NCBI RefSeq assembly: GCF_031769215.1 | Contig: NW_026781869.1 | Span: forward strand, 248,001 to 312,000 | DNA from: Ylistrum balloti | Lineage: Eukaryota | DNA length: 64,000 nt | Reading direction: 5' to 3' | Shown here: in pieces, positions 41,906 to 56,976 of the stretch | Layout of the letters: each line of letters opens with the position of its first letter | Position numbering within the stretch: position 1 is the first letter of the stretch | Notes under the pieces: model-generated | Told to the model about the DNA's origin: nothing | The model's input: only the letters and a program-made list of their open reading frames with translations | Databases searched by the model: none | Translations under genes and position numbers: made by a program

Positions 41906-42971
41906 CATTTAAAATACTTAATCTGAAACCGATACTACCTTACTAGTACATTAATCATAGCAACGAAAAAAAGTTGTTCTGACAGATTCAGCACCTTGCC
42001 TGTCAATCCGAGTAATGTCATGTCGTTAAACTGCGGACCAGGTTAATAGTTAGGAAACCAATCGAATACTATATCGAAGTTAATTCCTCTACTTATTATC
42101 ATAGCAATGTCCCGAAAGTTTTTTTACAGTCTGTACACGCGGTTGTGGTGGGTTTTAATCTAAAATCAAGTATCTTTACAGTATAAGTAACTATTCCATC
42201 ACCAATGAAGTACAACACTTTTGTCAATATCATGTCAATTTAGATGTCATATGTGTGTCCAAAGGCATTCAAGTTTACATTGTCGAAGAAGATGTTGTAT
42301 CAGAAGGATTATCTAAGGTTACGTACATCCCCGCCCTACATTAACGAAACGAAAAATCCGGTATTGTAACATCATAATATGGAATGACGTCGAGAAAGTC
42401 ATTTCCAACTAATGATTTAAAAGGGAAAAGAGCTTATAATAATTGACTGTATGTTAGTGGTGGCGAATGAACGGCTGTGAAAACCACGGGTCAGAACGCA
42501 ATATTTTGATGTATATTGAATCTGTCATGTCGATTGTCGTTTCCTGTCATACAGTCTAGCCGGCTGTGATGAGATGGTGATAGGAGTAAATACATAGACC
42601 ACTGACCTATTACAAAAAGACGAGTAATTACGATGATTGTACTAAAGACATATTGCAGACATTGCAATGTACCATGAAAGGCAAGTGTTTAGGTGTAATA
42701 TTTAAAATTCAATCAATGGCACACTGTAGTTTGTACTATTTTTCACATTTGAGATGCTGTACTTTTAATCAACATTTACAATAAAATGTTATCTGATTTT
42801 GGAAATTGTACTTGGTCGCATCCTCTTTTTGTATTAAATGAATTTGATTAACATCCTTGTTTTGAAAGCGAAGGGGCTCCAATGATACGGTCGAGCACGT
42901 AGTTGTGAACCATCTTCGGATCTTTTCTTTCATTTCGAAAAGAAAATAACGTTTTCTCGCTTATTTCTCTC

Positions 42972-43250
42972 TTGATAGTTGTGAATTTTCCATTTCTGGA
43001 TAGCAGCATACCTGCATCGCCAACATATGGCGTTTACGTGTCGCAGTTGATTCGATATTCACGAGCCTGTTCTCATTATCACGATTTTTTTCTTTTTGCC
43101 ATATGAAGCTGGAAGTATTTGCTGTTCGTTAGTGTGCCAATGTTTCCGTTGTCATATATTTTCCTCTCATTTGAGAACATGACATTACTTACTAGGATTG
43201 AACAGAATTTACATAGCAGGTGTCTCCGATGAAGCAGAAGACGTCTAGTC
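42972..43250 (+). mobile_element. Penelope-like retroelement RT C-terminal fragment with 3' tail (copy D)
   Basis: In-frame VVNFPFLDSSIPASPTYGVYVSQLIRYSRACSHYHDF (42978-43088), the characteristic post-RT motif of a Penelope-like family. It is followed by tttacatagcaggtgtctccgatgaagcagaagacg. Confidence 0.8.
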
Positions 43251-44109
43251 TTGTAATTATATTGACATGTTCGTATTTTCTGGTTATTTTTTAAGACAGC
43301 TTCAATCCTGGTCCTTATGCTGAATGTCTGCTGAAATGATAAAGACTACGGCTTCCATGCACTAATCGTATGGACTCGCCTCGCGCACTTGAGTAGGATA
43401 TTCTGAAATGACTGTTGACATAACGATAATAAAACTAATTTTGTCTCTAGGTCTAGAGATGCCAAAATCATCAACATAGTACTTAAATAAGTACTTCGGG
43501 TTCCCTACAAAATGCACAGCATTGAATGCAATGCTCAAGAATTGATCTTTGACTACGTGAACCAGTAGAAATGTCACGCCATCATGTCCAGTCTGATATA
43601 ACAGTGTGATTGTTCTATAATAGAGTCCATCAGTAGAGCCCATTATCCGATAACAACGTCTTCATATTATCACGTTTATATGTTTTGTCGTGTTAAGAAT
43701 TTTTTTGTCATAATGTTTTTCCCATTTCATTATCTTATCAGTATTTGTATAGCATGAGGTGATTTTCAGTGTTCAAGCTGTAACCTGAATTTATTCTATT
43801 CGTCAGCAATACGCATTGTTTAACAGACACATCTACGTTATTGTGTTTAGAGCATCACGTTTACGTCTCATAATTATTTGGTATGCCGATAAGTATCAAT
43901 GATTTCCGCACAAAAACGTTGAACGAAAATTCCCATCTCTTTACTGCCTCCCAGAGCCACTCATGACCTACGGGCTTTGGTTTGGGAAATTTCATTTTGC
44001 TACTGTCAGACCAATCAGACGTTTCCGTTGGAGGTATGGAGTTAATTAGGACAGAATTTACTAACGACAATTTCAGTCTATAATGTCTAAACAGTCAGCA
44101 ATACTTCAT

Positions 44110-44560: not shown

Positions 44561-46344
44561 TTTCAATTAAGATTCTGTGGACATTCTCATTATTGTTTGA
44601 GCATAATTCCTGTCTGGATTTTAATACTCGTGGTATAGTTCAACGTGTTATTTTGACACATTTTAGAAACTTCCTCAATATTTACAACACACATACAATA
44701 TACAATGTGCATAGTGCCACAGCATTACATGATGCCATAACTTTTATTGAGAATTTGTTTGTTATATGTGGGTGGAGTGGTGATTATGGAGTCCAAGCAT
44801 TTTGTTGAGAGAGAAAAACGGCAACTTTCATATCCATCCTTTCTTCATCCAGACAACACGATTTTGAGATACATGCATCATACCATCTAAATAGTCAAAC
44901 ATGCTATATTGTGCGTTATGTTCATGCTAAGTTTTGCATCTCCGCATTATGTGTCTAGGTTGTTCATTTAATTATGAATATCGGTTAATAACCTTTGTTA
45001 TGTTCTTGTGCCGCTGGTGTAACTGCGTGCAATAAAACGTATTAAATCTCTTTTTCTTAATGAAAAATACATATTATCTGCCGTTACCATTATATACCTA
45101 TATACAATCGTCGGTCGTGGAAATATGATTACGTTGTATGAGTACCGCTATAACTCTGTGATTCATTACAAATTGGGCTCGCCCTTATGATAACTGATAT
45201 AAAATCAAAGAAACGACTGCCTGATAATTATCATGGTACCATGCGACGATACATCAATCTCTTTAATCCGTCTTCCATAGACCCAACCTCTAAAAAGATT
45301 TGTTTTCAACCTACACATATGGTAATAGATACCTAGATGATATGTGACTTCTGTAAGTCTCAGGACAATCCCCACATAAAGTACAACTGTATTTACCCTC
45401 ACGGCGACACTGTGACGCCTGCTGTAAGAAGCTCGCTACTAAGCCCTAGCCCAGAGGATTCCTGGTCCCAAGGCAATCTGTGCTGGCGAGCTTGACTGTT
45501 TATCACCTTCACTAGTGTAAATGAATCTATTTTATTTCTAGTCCCAAGCTGAAATAATTGATGCTAGATCAGCTTTGTATACCTACACTAGAATTCCTGG
45601 TAGTCCAATGTGTTTTCCTATCGGAAACTTAGTTATATCTGTCGTTTCATGTTTTAAGGGATGTACGGGTGACACGGTGCAAAGTCAGTTCTGTCAAGGT
45701 ACAGTGTTCTGAAAGCAAAAAGAATGGATGACAAACATGATTTTTATTGCATTGTAAATTAACACTAAAAAGTAATTTGAAGTCAGGCATGATAAAAGAA
45801 TGAAACACATTTGTCTAACAATCCGAGCAAGTACTCTGATGTTTAGATTTTCTACTGGTGTGTTGATACAGCGAATTTGCTTTCGTTTATTGAGATAATT
45901 TAATGGATTACGTTTAACTGTTTAAATATGCATCTTCATCCTTCCGCCTTAACTTTGTCTTTTAAATTGAGCAGTAACAACTACTAACTACATAATGCTA
46001 TCAGTGTTCAGGTTGTGACACGTGGGTGTGTTGGCATCATAAATATGACCGTTTCTGGTCCTACCTTCCGTTAAACACTGTATTTATATTCATTTAACTA
46101 TTAAGGGACGTATGACCCCTTCTAACTACAATGTAATTGAGGCATCTTCATCGAAAGGCTATTAATCTACGTTTCTTTTTCTACAATAATGTTCGGCAAC
46201 ACAGCTGACCCTAGTTGTTTAGTCAATTCTATAGTAAAATTGCGGCAACTCCTTGCTGTTTCATGCTAATGGTTAGAGAGACACCAACAATGCATGTTAT
46301 TCGATAGTTCCATAACTAAGAGAACACGTCGTAATAGGAGAGAC

Positions 46345-46498: not shown

Positions 46499-46934
46499 AG
46501 GTAATGCAATTTAAAATTTGACGAACATATATGTCTTCTAGATTTCTGAGGCTTAGACACAATAGAACTGATATCGATACTATAAGAGTTACAATCACGT
46601 TCGCTCTCTGTACACCTGGAACATATCATGGCAAAATTGAAGATTCCATGTGCGTTACCTTGTGGACAAGATGAAAAGGATAGTTTGATCCTTTGATGTA
46701 CATCAAACGAATTTCGAGGTCATATACGGTATGTTGTAATGGCTTTGAAGTTGGGTGTCGCTCCTTTGTAAACTTCAAAAAGAGGCATGTAAATTACTTC
46801 GCCTGTGTCTTCTGTTTTGCCACGACATGTTCCAGGGGTGCATGGAGCGGAAGTGATCGTACCCCTAGTAGTATCCAAGATGTCGTTTTACAAATATAGC
46901 ACTATCCATACAGTCTACGATTTTTATTACAGAT

Positions 46935-47504
46935 ATGATGCGATTCATAGCACTGTTGACTCTACTCGTGGAGACTTGCCTGGCTTTCCCGCCATTCAGC
47001 CGCGGATCATACACACTCAAAGTGAGCGGTGAACGCAATGGATATGACGCAGACGCAACGCCAAGTACGGATCACACAAATTCTCTTAGTCTCGGTGACG
47101 TTATGATGCAGACCCTTGCCAACCAAGGGACAAATGTTGTGGTAAGTGACAGGTACGAGTATACTACAAACCCTTCCGAGGGTGACTGGGACGTGTTCCG
47201 GGCTGGGCTGGTCTCCCCACCCTCGGGCCTCCTACAACAGTGTTTGTCTCTTTCATCAACAGGCATGCAACAGCTGTTATACTGCATCAAACTATTATCG
47301 AATAAAGATCAACTTCATCAGTCAAATGTTCAATCAAAAAGAGGCCCGCTTAAGCTTAACCCAACAGGATGGAAGAGAAAAAAGAGGAGTACAAACGATG
47401 ACATGCAGAGAGAATTAGAAAATATAAGGATTCAGTCCATGTTGAATCAGTTACTTGAAAAACGCCAAAATGCCAATCCTCGATTTAACCCGACAGGCTG
47501 GTAA
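46935..47504 (+). CDS. Neuropeptide/peptide-hormone-like precursor (189 aa) yielding GPLKLNPTGW and QNANPRFNPTGW; family unassigned
   Basis: Single coding exon after acceptor tttttattacag (46931-46932). It has a signal peptide MMRFIALLTLLVETCLA, KR-GPLKLNPTGW-KRKKR, a spacer STNDDMQRELENIRIQSMLNQLLE, and KR-QNANPRFNPTGW-stop. The two peptides share NPTGW, and there is one Cys pair in the pro-region. Confidence 0.88.
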   Translation: MMRFIALLTLLVETCLAFPPFSRGSYTLKVSGERNGYDADATPSTDHTNSLSLGDVMMQTLANQGTNVVVSDRYEYTTNPSEGDWDVFRAGLVSPPSGLLQQCLSLSSTGMQQLLYCIKLLSNKDQLHQSNVQSKRGPLKLNPTGWKRKKRSTNDDMQRELENIRIQSMLNQLLEKRQNANPRFNPTGW

Positions 47505-48862
47505 TCACTCCAGGCGCCTAGATGGTGGTAAAACGAACATTTGTCGTGTGAAGTAGTCTCTCTCTCTTTTCTTATTTCATATGTTCCTATTAAATGAATT
47601 TATGAATGCAGAATTTGCGTTTTTGTGTTGGGTGACTGAAGACAAGAGAAGGTGGTTTGGTAGATAAGATAAAATAACACCAATATAGAACCGATATGTC
47701 AACAGACCGGTAGTTCAAGCTCTGAACAAAGAAACACATAAAGGACATCAGCACGTAAGTGAAGAATAAGACCGGCTTCATGAACGGTGTCGTAAGACAA
47801 ACAAATAAGGAATCGTAGAAAATATGCCGTTTCCTTAACAACTATATTTTTTTCGTCAGGCATTTACTATTGCGTTAGGAAAAGTAAGTAAATGTGAACA
47901 CTATAAAATGTTTTTATTCGAAAATGGTAGCACATGTAACTGCCTTCATAATAATAGAGTCATACACGGGCACGTCACGTTTTTTTTAATCATCTCATAT
48001 TGAAAATTAAGACAATGAGAGATTACTATACCTTCCCATCTTAATATCTGATACATTTCGATTTTCATTAGATATCTCTTCGGTTACAAACTTATAGGTC
48101 GTAACATCACATATCAGTCCTTATTAGGACCAAATTGCGATTTTACTGTCGAGCCATATTGTTTAGGTCATTATATTGCAGTGTGACAACGCTACACAAT
48201 CGTCTTTTTATGATCTTTGTTGTGGAGCCAAATATAATTTAGCGTCCTTGTAATTCTACGTCGTCACAACAATTGAGTTATTCATGATTTCTTCTAAAAC
48301 GAGGTCGATCAACATTGCTGATTTTACCAACATCTCTTTTACACTTTTCAGTAATGTTCCATTCAGCAATAGCCTACCACAATTTAGTTATCGAATTCAA
48401 CAAGCGGTCGTCAGCCTGATACGCGTGCGATATTTTTATTATGGAAATAACCCACTAGACTGGTCAGATCCCATCTCTCATAACTCAGTTTAATAAATAT
48501 ATATAGTAATGTACTTTACAATGCGAGGCGTAGATCATTTCTAATTTTAAAATTGGACCTGAACTGACGACTTTTGTACCATTTTGATTTCCCTCTACGG
48601 TGTTAGCAAATTATTAAATCTCCGTCTAAATAACTCACATTACGCAAGGCGTTTTTGTTTATAAGCCGTTCAGTGCAAGATATATGATATAACTTTCAAG
48701 GGACCTCTGATGTTCATCTGATTTGACATTCAGTTACACAATATATATGAGACGTGTTGACATGTCTGAAACGCTGCACTGAAGTATATAGTACACGAGA
48801 TGGTAGATTCTCGAACACTGTATTCGTCGATTTTCAAATAGGACTGGATCTAGTATAGCACA

Positions 48863-53904: not shown

Positions 53905-55407
53905 TCACACAGTTGATGTATTTTCACAAGCACAGCCTGTTCCTTCCTCAATTGGAATCATGACGTCATTTGAACCTTTATCAGAATCATTGTTTCGCGG
54001 TACGATCACGTATCCTGGGGTGAATGATTTTCTATTCCGTGGAGCACATTCTGCTCTACAATCGGCGGGGCATCGCTCCCAACCGCGACGTATTTTCTTT
54101 ACGTAACAACTTATGCACGGAAGGCTAAGCACAAGTTTGAACAGAAGTGTCAAAAACGGTAGAACAGAACTCAAAAACGTGATTGATCGAACCATTGCAA
54201 CGGGTCCTTTTGACCAACCAGGAGCTCCCATTATTACCACGTGACCAAGTGACAGTATCAAGGTGAGATGTCCGAGTTTTGATTGGACGAATCTCCACTC
54301 CCGCCAGTTGAGTGTGTCAGTCACGGATGGTATGGTGGAGATGGCAATTAAACACATTGAGATAAATGCGAGAATTCCTGTGAGACATGCTGCCTCCCCT
54401 TTCCACACCATCCACGTCTTGATAGGCACTTGAATGTCGTGGGTAAGATTGCCCGGAATTGTCAGGGACGTTGATTGATACCATGAACTCAAGTATGTCG
54501 GACTCATGATAAGGACGGACATGATCACGTGCACTACCACCAAAGTAAAGGCCACTAGCCCGAGCTGCTTACGTGTTTTTAACCAGCGGTCGAGCCATGC
54601 CGGAAAACGAATGTGCTTAGTTCCGTAATAGATCTGAAAAAACGAAGCCACAGAGCTAGGTAAGTAGGTACAGGATATCAGAGTTATTGCAGTCATACAC
54701 AGCGGTTTGTTCAGCACCTTCACAAAGATTTGATCCCAACGGTAAGCCGTCTTTTCGACAAAGTAAATAAAAATGATATACAAAAGCCAGATGTTAAAAA
54801 CACCAATCGCGAACGCTATCGGCCCCCTCCATGCAGGCAAAAGCTTTAACGGAAACGCTTCGATCTTTCTCGACGACTGTAATAGACCCATGTCAACGGG
54901 TGAAAATCCCATGTCACGAGCTATCACCGATACCTTTTCCCGCGATTCATTGTTGTCGCTGGCAATGAACACCTGTCGGCTGCCACCGCTGCTGTCAATC
55001 TCCATGGCGTAGGCCGAAATGACGTTAAAACCCTTCACCACGACGGCGGCCGGGACCAGCCGGCTGAGATACTCCGCATTGCTGTCGGTTTTACTAGGAT
55101 GGTCTCGGTTGGACACGTCTATTAGAATTTTGCCGTGTACGTTTTCTGTGTGGGCGGATAGACAATCTTTGTAGTTTGCGGCGTGGACTGCAACAAAGAT
55201 GATGGAATTACGTTTGAGACAGTCTTCAATCGTAGTGATATTGATGTTACACATACACTCGTCGACAAATGCCAACGTCCGGTCATCAGGCTTCCGGCTA
55301 CCGACGATGACGTTGTATCCAGCATAGAATAACCGATTTGCTAACGCACGTGCGAAGTTGCCAGTTCCAATGATTCCAATGTTCCGGGCGACTGCCTGCT
55401 TCGTCAT
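53905..55407 (-). CDS. STEAP: STEAP-family metalloreductase (N-terminal NADPH-binding oxidoreductase domain plus ferric-reductase transmembrane domain), 500 aa
   Basis: Rossmann motif IGIIGTGNFARALA, then GSRKP, ILIDVSN, SNAEYLS, VVKGFNVISAYAM, RKQLGL, WREWRFVQSKLG, and candidate heme-ligand His in VVVHVIMS and LGHVV. The true start is the ATG at 55407, 10 nt after an acceptor tgatatttccag (exon begins 55417); the ORF track's TTG start is intronic. Minus-strand AATAAA at 53766-53771 and 53786-53791. The STEAP2/3/4 subtype cannot be assigned. Confidence 0.95.
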   Translation of the reverse strand: MTKQAVARNIGIIGTGNFARALANRLFYAGYNVIVGSRKPDDRTLAFVDECMCNINITTIEDCLKRNSIIFVAVHAANYKDCLSAHTENVHGKILIDVSNRDHPSKTDSNAEYLSRLVPAAVVVKGFNVISAYAMEIDSSGGSRQVFIASDNNESREKVSVIARDMGFSPVDMGLLQSSRKIEAFPLKLLPAWRGPIAFAIGVFNIWLLYIIFIYFVEKTAYRWDQIFVKVLNKPLCMTAITLISCTYLPSSVASFFQIYYGTKHIRFPAWLDRWLKTRKQLGLVAFTLVVVHVIMSVLIMSPTYLSSWYQSTSLTIPGNLTHDIQVPIKTWMVWKGEAACLTGILAFISMCLIAISTIPSVTDTLNWREWRFVQSKLGHLTLILSLGHVVIMGAPGWSKGPVAMVRSITFLSSVLPFLTLLFKLVLSLPCISCYVKKIRRGWERCPADCRAECAPRNRKSFTPGYVIVPRNNDSDKGSNDVMIPIEEGTGCACENTSTV

Positions 55408-56976
55408 AATGCTAGGCCTGGAAATATCAATCAATTAAGCTATAGTAATTAAAATGATAAGTTTCCATTTACGTAAAATCACAGGAAATAGATTTTTTAA
55501 AGGTAAACCTAATTGGTACAAAGAAGGAATTCAAGCATTCACATAAATCTGCGGAGTTTATTCCGGAAAAAGCTGTGCTATCTTTTAATGTATTATTTTT
55601 GAGAACGTAACACAGTAATAATGATGTACTATGCAAGGTTTGCCAGAATTTCATTAAACACAAGTCGAGAATGTTTGAATAAGACATGGAATATTAAAAA
55701 TAACTGTTGCGCTGAGTATAATTACATGTCTATGTACACAAAGACAATATCATCCGATTATTAAATCAGCTTCATGCCAAATTTCCGGACCATATTAATG
55801 AAATACAAATCATTTCCAGGAAATGTTGTATTAATAATCTGGATAAAAAGGCGACAGTAAAAGCTGTTATCACGAAGTAATTGTGTAAGAGATATCGCCT
55901 CTCACGACAGATTGTAGGCAACTCAAAGCTACTGATTTCATTTTCAAAATTTAGATCTGTACAAAACGCACGCCGAAAAAAAATTATACATGCAATTAAC
56001 ATCTACAAGTATTTTGTCATATATATCTTGAATAGTATCTTGATTTCAGAACTGTAAAGTGTGGCTAAGTGCCTAATGTTTTGCGTGAAACATACATATG
56101 AATGAACAATACTTCATCGTGACGTAATATAGCCAATTGATCTGCGATCAAAAACAAGACCTTATCTGTAACGCTTTGGATTTCAGTGTTATCGGCCAAG
56201 ATTGGAAAACTTATGCATGTGGTTTATCGAGACGGAAGTATGTGCACAAGATATACATAAATGATACGTGATCTCCATAATAAGTTCATATACATAATGA
56301 CGTGTCTACGTCCTGCTTAAACATTGACAGAATAGCAATCATCGGCTTAACAATATATATAAAAATCTTCTTTTCTCTAGCAAATATCTTTTTTTTTTTT
56401 TTTGGTTAAAAATGCGAGTATTGAAAATCCGTGCATGGCATTAAGTATCCATATGTTGAAATGTATGAAGTATATATATGTATAAAACACAGTCCATTTT
56501 CTGCGTTAAACATTTGACATTTAAACCCACTAGTCAATACAATAACAATCGTGCACAGTATGGTTACTACATCGATATCAAAATGCCAATGCTAACGTCA
56601 TGTTGTCCTGTTTAGAATAAGTAATGATTTTACTGTCAATATCCGCGCCTAATTTTACAAATTGTATAAATACAAATGGATTTCAGTATATCACTCATCT
56701 ATTGATAAATTTCGTCGGTATTTTTTTTACTGGGCGGAAACCATGTTCGTGGTTAGATCAAAAGACCGAAGCAGAAAAAATGTTTTTAATCATGGAATAT
56801 AAAATCGTACTTTTTGTAAAATACTATAAGAATATCAAACTGTTGAAAATCTAAACTACTATGAAAACCGATTTTCTATAATATAAAATCACAGGAGAAA
56901 CACTTGTCGTAATCCTGTATATTTAAACCTGTAACACTCATTATGTAAGTTAAAGAAATAAACAAAACAGAAAAAA

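Follow-up and report, generated by a model that had tools for sequence, protein, structure and literature searches.

A putative prohormone-type precursor with two non-amidated NPTGW peptides in scallops and other bivalves

The 64,000-nt stretch of Ylistrum balloti DNA analyzed here (contig NW_026781869.1, positions 248,001 to 312,000 of the forward strand; hereafter the window) contains, at 46935-47504 on the plus strand, an uninterrupted open reading frame of 189 codons followed by a TAA stop. According to the ORF list and the sequence, this is a single coding exon, and its assignment as a coding sequence is backed by orthologue identity and dN/dS values. The gene probably encodes a secretory-pathway precursor of the prohormone or proneuropeptide type that is processed by convertases, and it belongs to an unnamed family found here only in bivalves.

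The precursor is ordered as leader, pro-region, KR, GPLKLNPTGW (peptide 1), KRKKR, STNDDMQRELENIRIQSMLNQLLE, KR, QNANPRFNPTGW (peptide 2) and TAA, all on the plus strand. The predicted signal peptide, MMRFIALLTLLVETCLA, covers residues 1-17 (46935-46985), with cleavage before FPP. It was assigned by eye and from an AlphaFold helix, on the basis of the hydrophobic N-terminal helix at residues 2-17 and the cleavage-like site CLA/FP. An equivalent signal-peptide-like segment is present in all family members; relative to the cleavage position, the family has a small residue at -1, and Pro is nearly invariant at +2. The pro-region (residues 18-134, 117 aa; 46986-47336) has no internal dibasic site and carries the only two Cys residues past the signal peptide, C103 (47241-47243) and C117 (47283-47285), both on one predicted helix. 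Dibasic sites in the precursor are confined to residues 135-136 (KR before peptide 1, 47337-47342), residues 147-151 (KRKKR, a multibasic site of the furin type R-X-K/R-R, 47373-47387) and residues 176-177 (KR before peptide 2, 47460-47465). Between the latter two sites is a 24-aa spacer (47388-47459), which AlphaFold folds as a helix and which is conserved. Peptide 1 is at 47343-47372 and would have a free-acid C-terminus once its basic residues are trimmed; peptide 2 is at 47466-47501, and its C-terminal Trp abuts the TAA stop codon at 47502-47504.

Peptidylglycine amidation requires a Gly donor. Neither Trp precedes a Gly, which rules amidation out and would leave both peptides with a free-acid C-terminus. 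In the proposed processing, signal peptidase would cut off the leader, PC/furin-type convertases would cleave at KR (135-136), KRKKR (147-151) and KR (176-177), a carboxypeptidase would remove the basic residues from peptide 1, and Gln178 at the N-terminus of peptide 2 would probably cyclise to pyroglutamate. The expected products are GPLKLNPTGW-OH, (p)QNANPRFNPTGW-OH, the helical spacer of 24 residues and a pro-peptide of 117 residues with two Cys. The calculated [M+H]+ values are 1082.599 for GPLKLNPTGW, 1384.639 for peptide 2 in its pGlu form and 2890.403 for the spacer. The amidating enzyme would not be needed, and peptide 2 would be released without any C-terminal processing. The conserved core of the two peptides would be [LF]-N-P-T-G-W-OH, and the short x[LF]NPTGW peptides are likely to be the bioactive ligands of a receptor. 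The spacer may be a third product, or alternatively a processing or sorting helix. The cleavages, the pyroglutamate, a signaling function and the cell type are what we infer from the precursor sequence. The first-pass annotation had predicted the same two products, GPLKLNPTGW and pQNANPRFNPTGW, with non-amidated ends; both match the open reading frame and its basic sites exactly, and a Gly follows neither Trp here nor the corresponding Trp in any of the 43 family members.

The back-translated NPTGW pattern has two matches in the 64-kb window, both within this open reading frame, and none in 100 shuffles. The two copies use different codons, with three synonymous differences between them. Judged from the sequences, it is far beyond chance that all 43 related proteins share the motif, its copy number and the layout.

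The relatives were recovered by a whole-library HMM search with a scallop profile and by two profile word searches. The family comprises at least 28 distinct proteins, or 43 when near-identical cluster members are counted, and its named sources are Pecten, Argopecten, Dreissena polymorpha, Mya arenaria, Mercenaria mercenaria, Mactra antiquata and the unionid Potamilus streckersoni. The orders Pectinida, Unionida, Myida and Venerida are thus represented, and all named homologues are annotated as "uncharacterized" or "hypothetical". Members are 179-278 aa long, with the exception of two truncated cluster members. All have exactly two NPTGW-type copies and the same order of parts, and all end at FNPTGW-stop. 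The common layout is a leader, a variable pro-region, a basic site (KR or other) and then x(4-20)[LV]NP[TS]GW, such that the basic site lies 4-20 residues before the first NPTGW in all members; 4-5 basic residues follow [LV]NP[TS]GW in 43 of 43 members and a Gly in none. This multibasic site is kept throughout the family as RKRR, RRRR or KRKRR. It is followed by an acidic stretch, a helix ending in ..LLxKR, 4-7 residues and the terminal FNPTGW. The C-terminal half of the spacer is conserved family-wide, as ..RNMxELLEKR or ..SMLNQLLEKR.

In an alignment of the 28 sequences the invariant columns are C103, N142, P143, G145, W146, K176, R177 and F184-W189. Eleven of these 13 columns are the NPxGW and FNPTGW cores and the KR before peptide 2, and in this alignment conservation is shown to be centered on the peptide cores and on that KR, the pattern that a prohormone should show. 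Between bivalve orders the pro-region can hardly be aligned, while the multibasic sites are invariant. Exactly two Cys follow the signal peptide in every member, although only C103 aligns in all. In the scallop clade and in the relatives P0004 and the P0006 group, the two Cys are spaced 14 residues apart (C-x13-C) and share a predicted helix; in the clams and the unionid the spacing is about 75-96 residues; the number of Cys is conserved but their positions are not. The maximum-likelihood tree splits into one clade that includes the scallops and another that includes all named clams together with the freshwater mussel. Its topology, and the single sequence found per named species, are consistent with vertical descent. 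The first-pass annotation had read the gene as a secretory precursor of two peptides and had proposed conservation of the motif as a check; the order of parts, the copy number and the cleavage sites are all conserved across bivalve orders, and the motif is kept in the 28 distinct proteins. No oyster, Mytilus, gastropod, cephalopod or non-mollusc members were found. The scallop-only HMM missed even the clam members, and therefore absence elsewhere is to be read as "not found" and not as "shown absent".

Comparison among scallops shows a real gene, which the substitution pattern indicates to be under strong purifying selection. In a word-index search the orthologues of Pecten maximus (LOC117341623) and Argopecten irradians have 90% and 81% identity to the window protein, respectively. 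By the Nei-Gojobori method, the whole coding sequence has a dN/dS of 0.05-0.07 at a dS of 0.9-1.5 across the three scallop genera, and the C-terminal module has a dN/dS of 0.014-0.033. Within scallops the pro-region is nearly as constrained as the peptides (dN/dS 0.05-0.075). Such constraint is unusual for a mere spacer and counts against the reading of the gene as a processed prohormone precursor. In a second individual of the species, represented by a genomic run, one SNP (V93I) is present in the 570-bp coding sequence and more than 20 SNPs are listed in roughly 400 bp of the 3′ flank.

A polypyrimidine tract with a CAG splice acceptor is present at 46920-46932 (+), 2 nt upstream of the ATG, as read from sequence only. 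In the window, in P. maximus and in Argopecten alike, a polypyrimidine tract and YAG stop 2 nt short of the ATG, and a similar acceptor 2-11 nt before the ATG occurs at two Dreissena loci and in five further relatives, for a total of 10 of 11 genomic loci. This conserved acceptor just before the ATG would make the coding sequence one exon behind a 5′UTR intron, and an upstream non-coding exon would be implied. The one family locus that does not have a polypyrimidine-AG acceptor before the ATG is L013, a Logan contig from relative P0037. It has a canonical TATATAAA about 90 nt upstream of the ATG, is ambiguous as to genomic or transcript origin, and could reflect loss of the 5′UTR intron in that lineage. 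Logan contigs L006-L008, L012, L014 and L015 were considered as transcripts and rejected; they are genomic, because either the intronic polypyrimidine-AG is still present ahead of the ATG or the contig runs collinear with genomic DNA.

Outside of the coding sequence, the P. maximus and Argopecten loci each align to the window at one further block only. The ~210-bp part of it that all three loci share (45350-45560, +; L009 8149-8364, L010 7696-7906), delimited by alignment of the three scallop loci, is situated 1.4-2.3 kb upstream of the coding exon in the same orientation in all three scallops and is the only alignable non-coding DNA common to them. Its invariant motifs are ACATAAAGTAC (TATA-like), GGCGACA, TTTATCA and TGAAATAATT. 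It may be a promoter and/or a non-coding first exon, or an enhancer. On the 3′ side, a putative ATTAAA polyadenylation signal is at 47589-47594 (+), 85 nt past the stop, and ATTAAA or AATAAA is found roughly 85-95 nt past the stop in the window, P. maximus and Argopecten. A scan for bacterial-type promoters and terminators gave results not above those of shuffled sequences and is irrelevant for an animal gene.

Other elements are present in the vicinity. A MITE-like element, whose inverted arms of 68 nt are 78% complementary, is at 46576-46875, inside the putative 5′UTR intron and immediately 5′ of the coding exon. In the genomic run its contig depth is about 3000-4800x vs about 10x for single-copy sequence, and the P. 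maximus and Argopecten loci lack it at the equivalent place. Another repeat of very high copy number, at 42797-43387, reaches a summed contig depth of up to about 7950x in the genomic run, with many rearranged joints. Downstream, on the minus strand at 53905-55434, is an uninterrupted 509-codon open reading frame for a STEAP-type metalloreductase with the Pfam domains F420_oxidored and Ferric_reduct transmembrane domain; it looks intronless, and a comparison with the 10 kb that follow the orthologous loci in P. maximus and Argopecten revealed no counterpart.

A search of the window protein against Pfam gave no family at E values up to 10. Of three relatives, P0004 and P0006 also gave none at E up to 0.01, and P0007 gave only a sub-threshold chance match. 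Five published sets of molluscan and spiralian neuropeptide sequences were also scanned. The 63 Yesso scallop precursors and the mass spectrometry peptide table of Zhang 2018 (PMC5996578) contain neither PTGW nor the precursor fragments tested, and the motif and other precursor fragments are absent from the de Oliveira 2019 supplements (PMC6425005), Realis-Doyelle 2021 (PMC8398477) and Stewart 2014 (PMC4200219). In the Thiel 2021 supplements (PMC8557429) the sole NPTGW match is inside the human NPY4R receptor sequence and is due to chance. Searches of the searchable literature for NPTGW as a peptide, for related pentamers and for the LOC identifiers of homologues returned nothing relevant. The family is, as far as these sequence comparisons extend, undescribed in the catalogues and literature checked, and its putative mechanism is that of a standard prohormone. 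The proposal in the first-pass annotation that the peptides belong to no known family, and may represent an orphan ligand family, is upheld by the lack of a Pfam match, by the "uncharacterized" status of the homologues and by the absence from five neuropeptide sequence sets; neither clustering with a described family nor loss of the motif was observed.

The alternative that survives best accepts the same precursor and the same processing and places the peptides outside of the nervous system. It is a minority possibility. The source would be gonad, mantle, gill, digestive gland or haemocytes, and the peptides would serve as a hormone, as a cue for gametes or spawning, or as a signal carried in the water. 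The absence of the gene from the published precursor and peptide lists of Yesso scallop ganglia fits this alternative and argues mildly, and with limited weight, against abundant ganglionic expression. Furin sites of the R-X-K/R-R type occur also in constitutively secreted proteins, and the central furin-type site of the precursor would suit a constitutive pathway; the free-acid termini, for which no amidating enzyme is needed, point in the same direction. However, nothing positive points to a particular tissue, and the layout and the pattern of conservation fit neuropeptides equally well.

Structure modeling bears on a second alternative. AlphaFold, run with the family alignment, gave a mean pLDDT of 58 and a pTM of 0.20. 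Helices are predicted for the leader (residues 2-17), residues 53-63, residues 98-130, which bear both Cys, and the spacer (residues 153-179). The spacer helix is the most confident part, with a 10-residue block reaching a mean pLDDT of up to 92. The remainder is disordered, both NPTGW peptides included, and the pro-region is mostly of low confidence or disordered. A model of helices and disorder with no globular fold is in keeping with a processed precursor rather than with a globular protein. A possible fibronectin-type lead was also followed. In the HMM search, P0005, a 3148-aa FN3-repeat metagenome protein, matched residues 48-111 of the pro-region (window 47076-47267) in eight stretches, at 25% pairwise identity. 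The lead was rejected because this stretch is missing from non-scallop members and is disordered in the AlphaFold model; the match is probably a repeat-inflated chance match.

According to this second alternative, the product is a small secreted, disulfide-linked helical protein that stays uncleaved or is only partly cleaved, with the NPTGW segments as structural or binding elements. The strong constraint on the pro-region within scallops, the retention of two Cys in every member and the confidently predicted and conserved spacer helix are in its favor. Nevertheless we consider it improbable: the pro-region loses its alignability between orders at the same time as the multibasic sites remain invariant, the pTM value gives no indication of a globular fold, and the two Cys shift in their spacing between the scallop clade and the clams.

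The precursor could also be a diverged member of the GnRH/AKH/RPCH-corazonin group or of the APGWamide/Wamide families. RPCH is pQLNFSPGW-amide, to be compared with the clam peptide 2, pQRLQFNPTGW. AKH/RPCH peptides follow directly after the signal peptide, are present in a single copy and are amidated through a Gly donor. The likeness consists of short peptides, an N-terminal Gln in many members, an aromatic-x-P sequence and a Trp near or at the C-terminus, and the terminal F-x-P-x-G-W of peptide 2 also resembles the F-S-P-G-W of RPCH and the P-G-W of APGWamide. The generic features of a prohormone are present, namely an N-terminal signal peptide, as judged from helix and sequence, and conserved peptides bracketed by basic sites. 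Several family-specific features differ. The NPTGW peptides are at the C-terminal end of the precursor, starting at residues 137 and 178 of 189, and there are two of them. In all 43 sequences, what comes after the Trp is K/R or the stop codon; the amide donor that would yield the Trp-amide of RPCH, APGWamide or the Wamide superfamily (MIP/GLWamide) is found in no member. Peptide 1 has neither pGlu nor Phe. For peptide 2 the picture is mixed: most members start it with Q and some with E, D or L, and the spacing from Phe to Trp in F-N-P-T-G-W is i to i+5, vs i to i+4 between aromatic-4 and Trp-8 in AKH/RPCH. As to APGWamide, there are two copies only, and a Thr stands between Pro and Gly. Furthermore, scallops already carry a canonical tandem xPGW-GKR APGWamide precursor, and no sequence search linked the families. 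Membership in any of these families is therefore very unlikely, and the loose character of the resemblance, as worded in the first-pass annotation, is borne out.

The weakest alternative, that of a chance or non-coding open frame, could appeal to the fact that the sole run holding the window stretch gives no RNA evidence (its even ~10x depth over intergenic DNA and its lack of splice joints identify it as genomic DNA), but it is effectively refuted by the conservation data, i.e., the low dN/dS at near-saturated dS, homologues from at least seven named species (NCBI has LOC gene models for four of them), and the conserved splice acceptor and polyA signal.

A processed prohormone-type precursor is thus the preferred reading. 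It is about as likely as not that the NPTGW peptides are in addition the ligands of a bivalve-specific peptide-receptor system, one already present in the ancestor that scallops, freshwater mussels and clams have in common. If they are, they would be unusual ligands with a non-amidated C-terminal Trp that were missed by every molluscan neuropeptide catalogue checked, and further products released along with them could be the spacer helix and the pro-peptide with its two Cys. Bivalves matter greatly to aquaculture and to ecosystems, and the peptide-level control of their spawning, growth and feeding is still poorly understood. The NPTGW pair provides concrete new candidate ligands for receptor deorphanisation and physiological assays, and the precursor shows that non-amidated, low-copy precursors can escape pattern-based catalogues. 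For comparative neuroendocrinology it is an incremental addition and holds no conceptual surprise.

Among known molluscan systems, the scallop APGWamide precursor contains about ten tandem xPGW-GKR units that give rise to amidated tetrapeptides (Zhang 2018 Fig. S1, PMC5996578). It shares with the NPTGW precursor the character of a molluscan secretory precursor with P-(x)-G-W peptides flanked by KR, but the latter has two peptides of 10-12 residues, no amide donor and a large Cys-containing pro-region. The Patinopecten yessoensis GWamide precursor is built of KRGWDGIDFTFGKR-type repeats, each unit beginning with GW (PMC5996578). It is similar in being a lineage-restricted secreted precursor found by sequence pattern, with no assigned function; however, with its N-terminal GW in each unit it is unrelated to the NPTGW precursor. 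The nearest analogue in layout, with no homology claimed, is vertebrate neurotensin/neuromedin N, which has a leader, a long pro-region and two tandem peptides. These two related, dibasic-flanked peptides lie near the C-terminal end and are non-amidated, and pyroglutamate is the first residue of the longer one. The sequences are not similar (PYIL vs NPTGW), and, unlike neurotensin, the NPTGW precursor has a 24-residue helix and a furin-type site between its two copies, and its second peptide ends at the stop codon.
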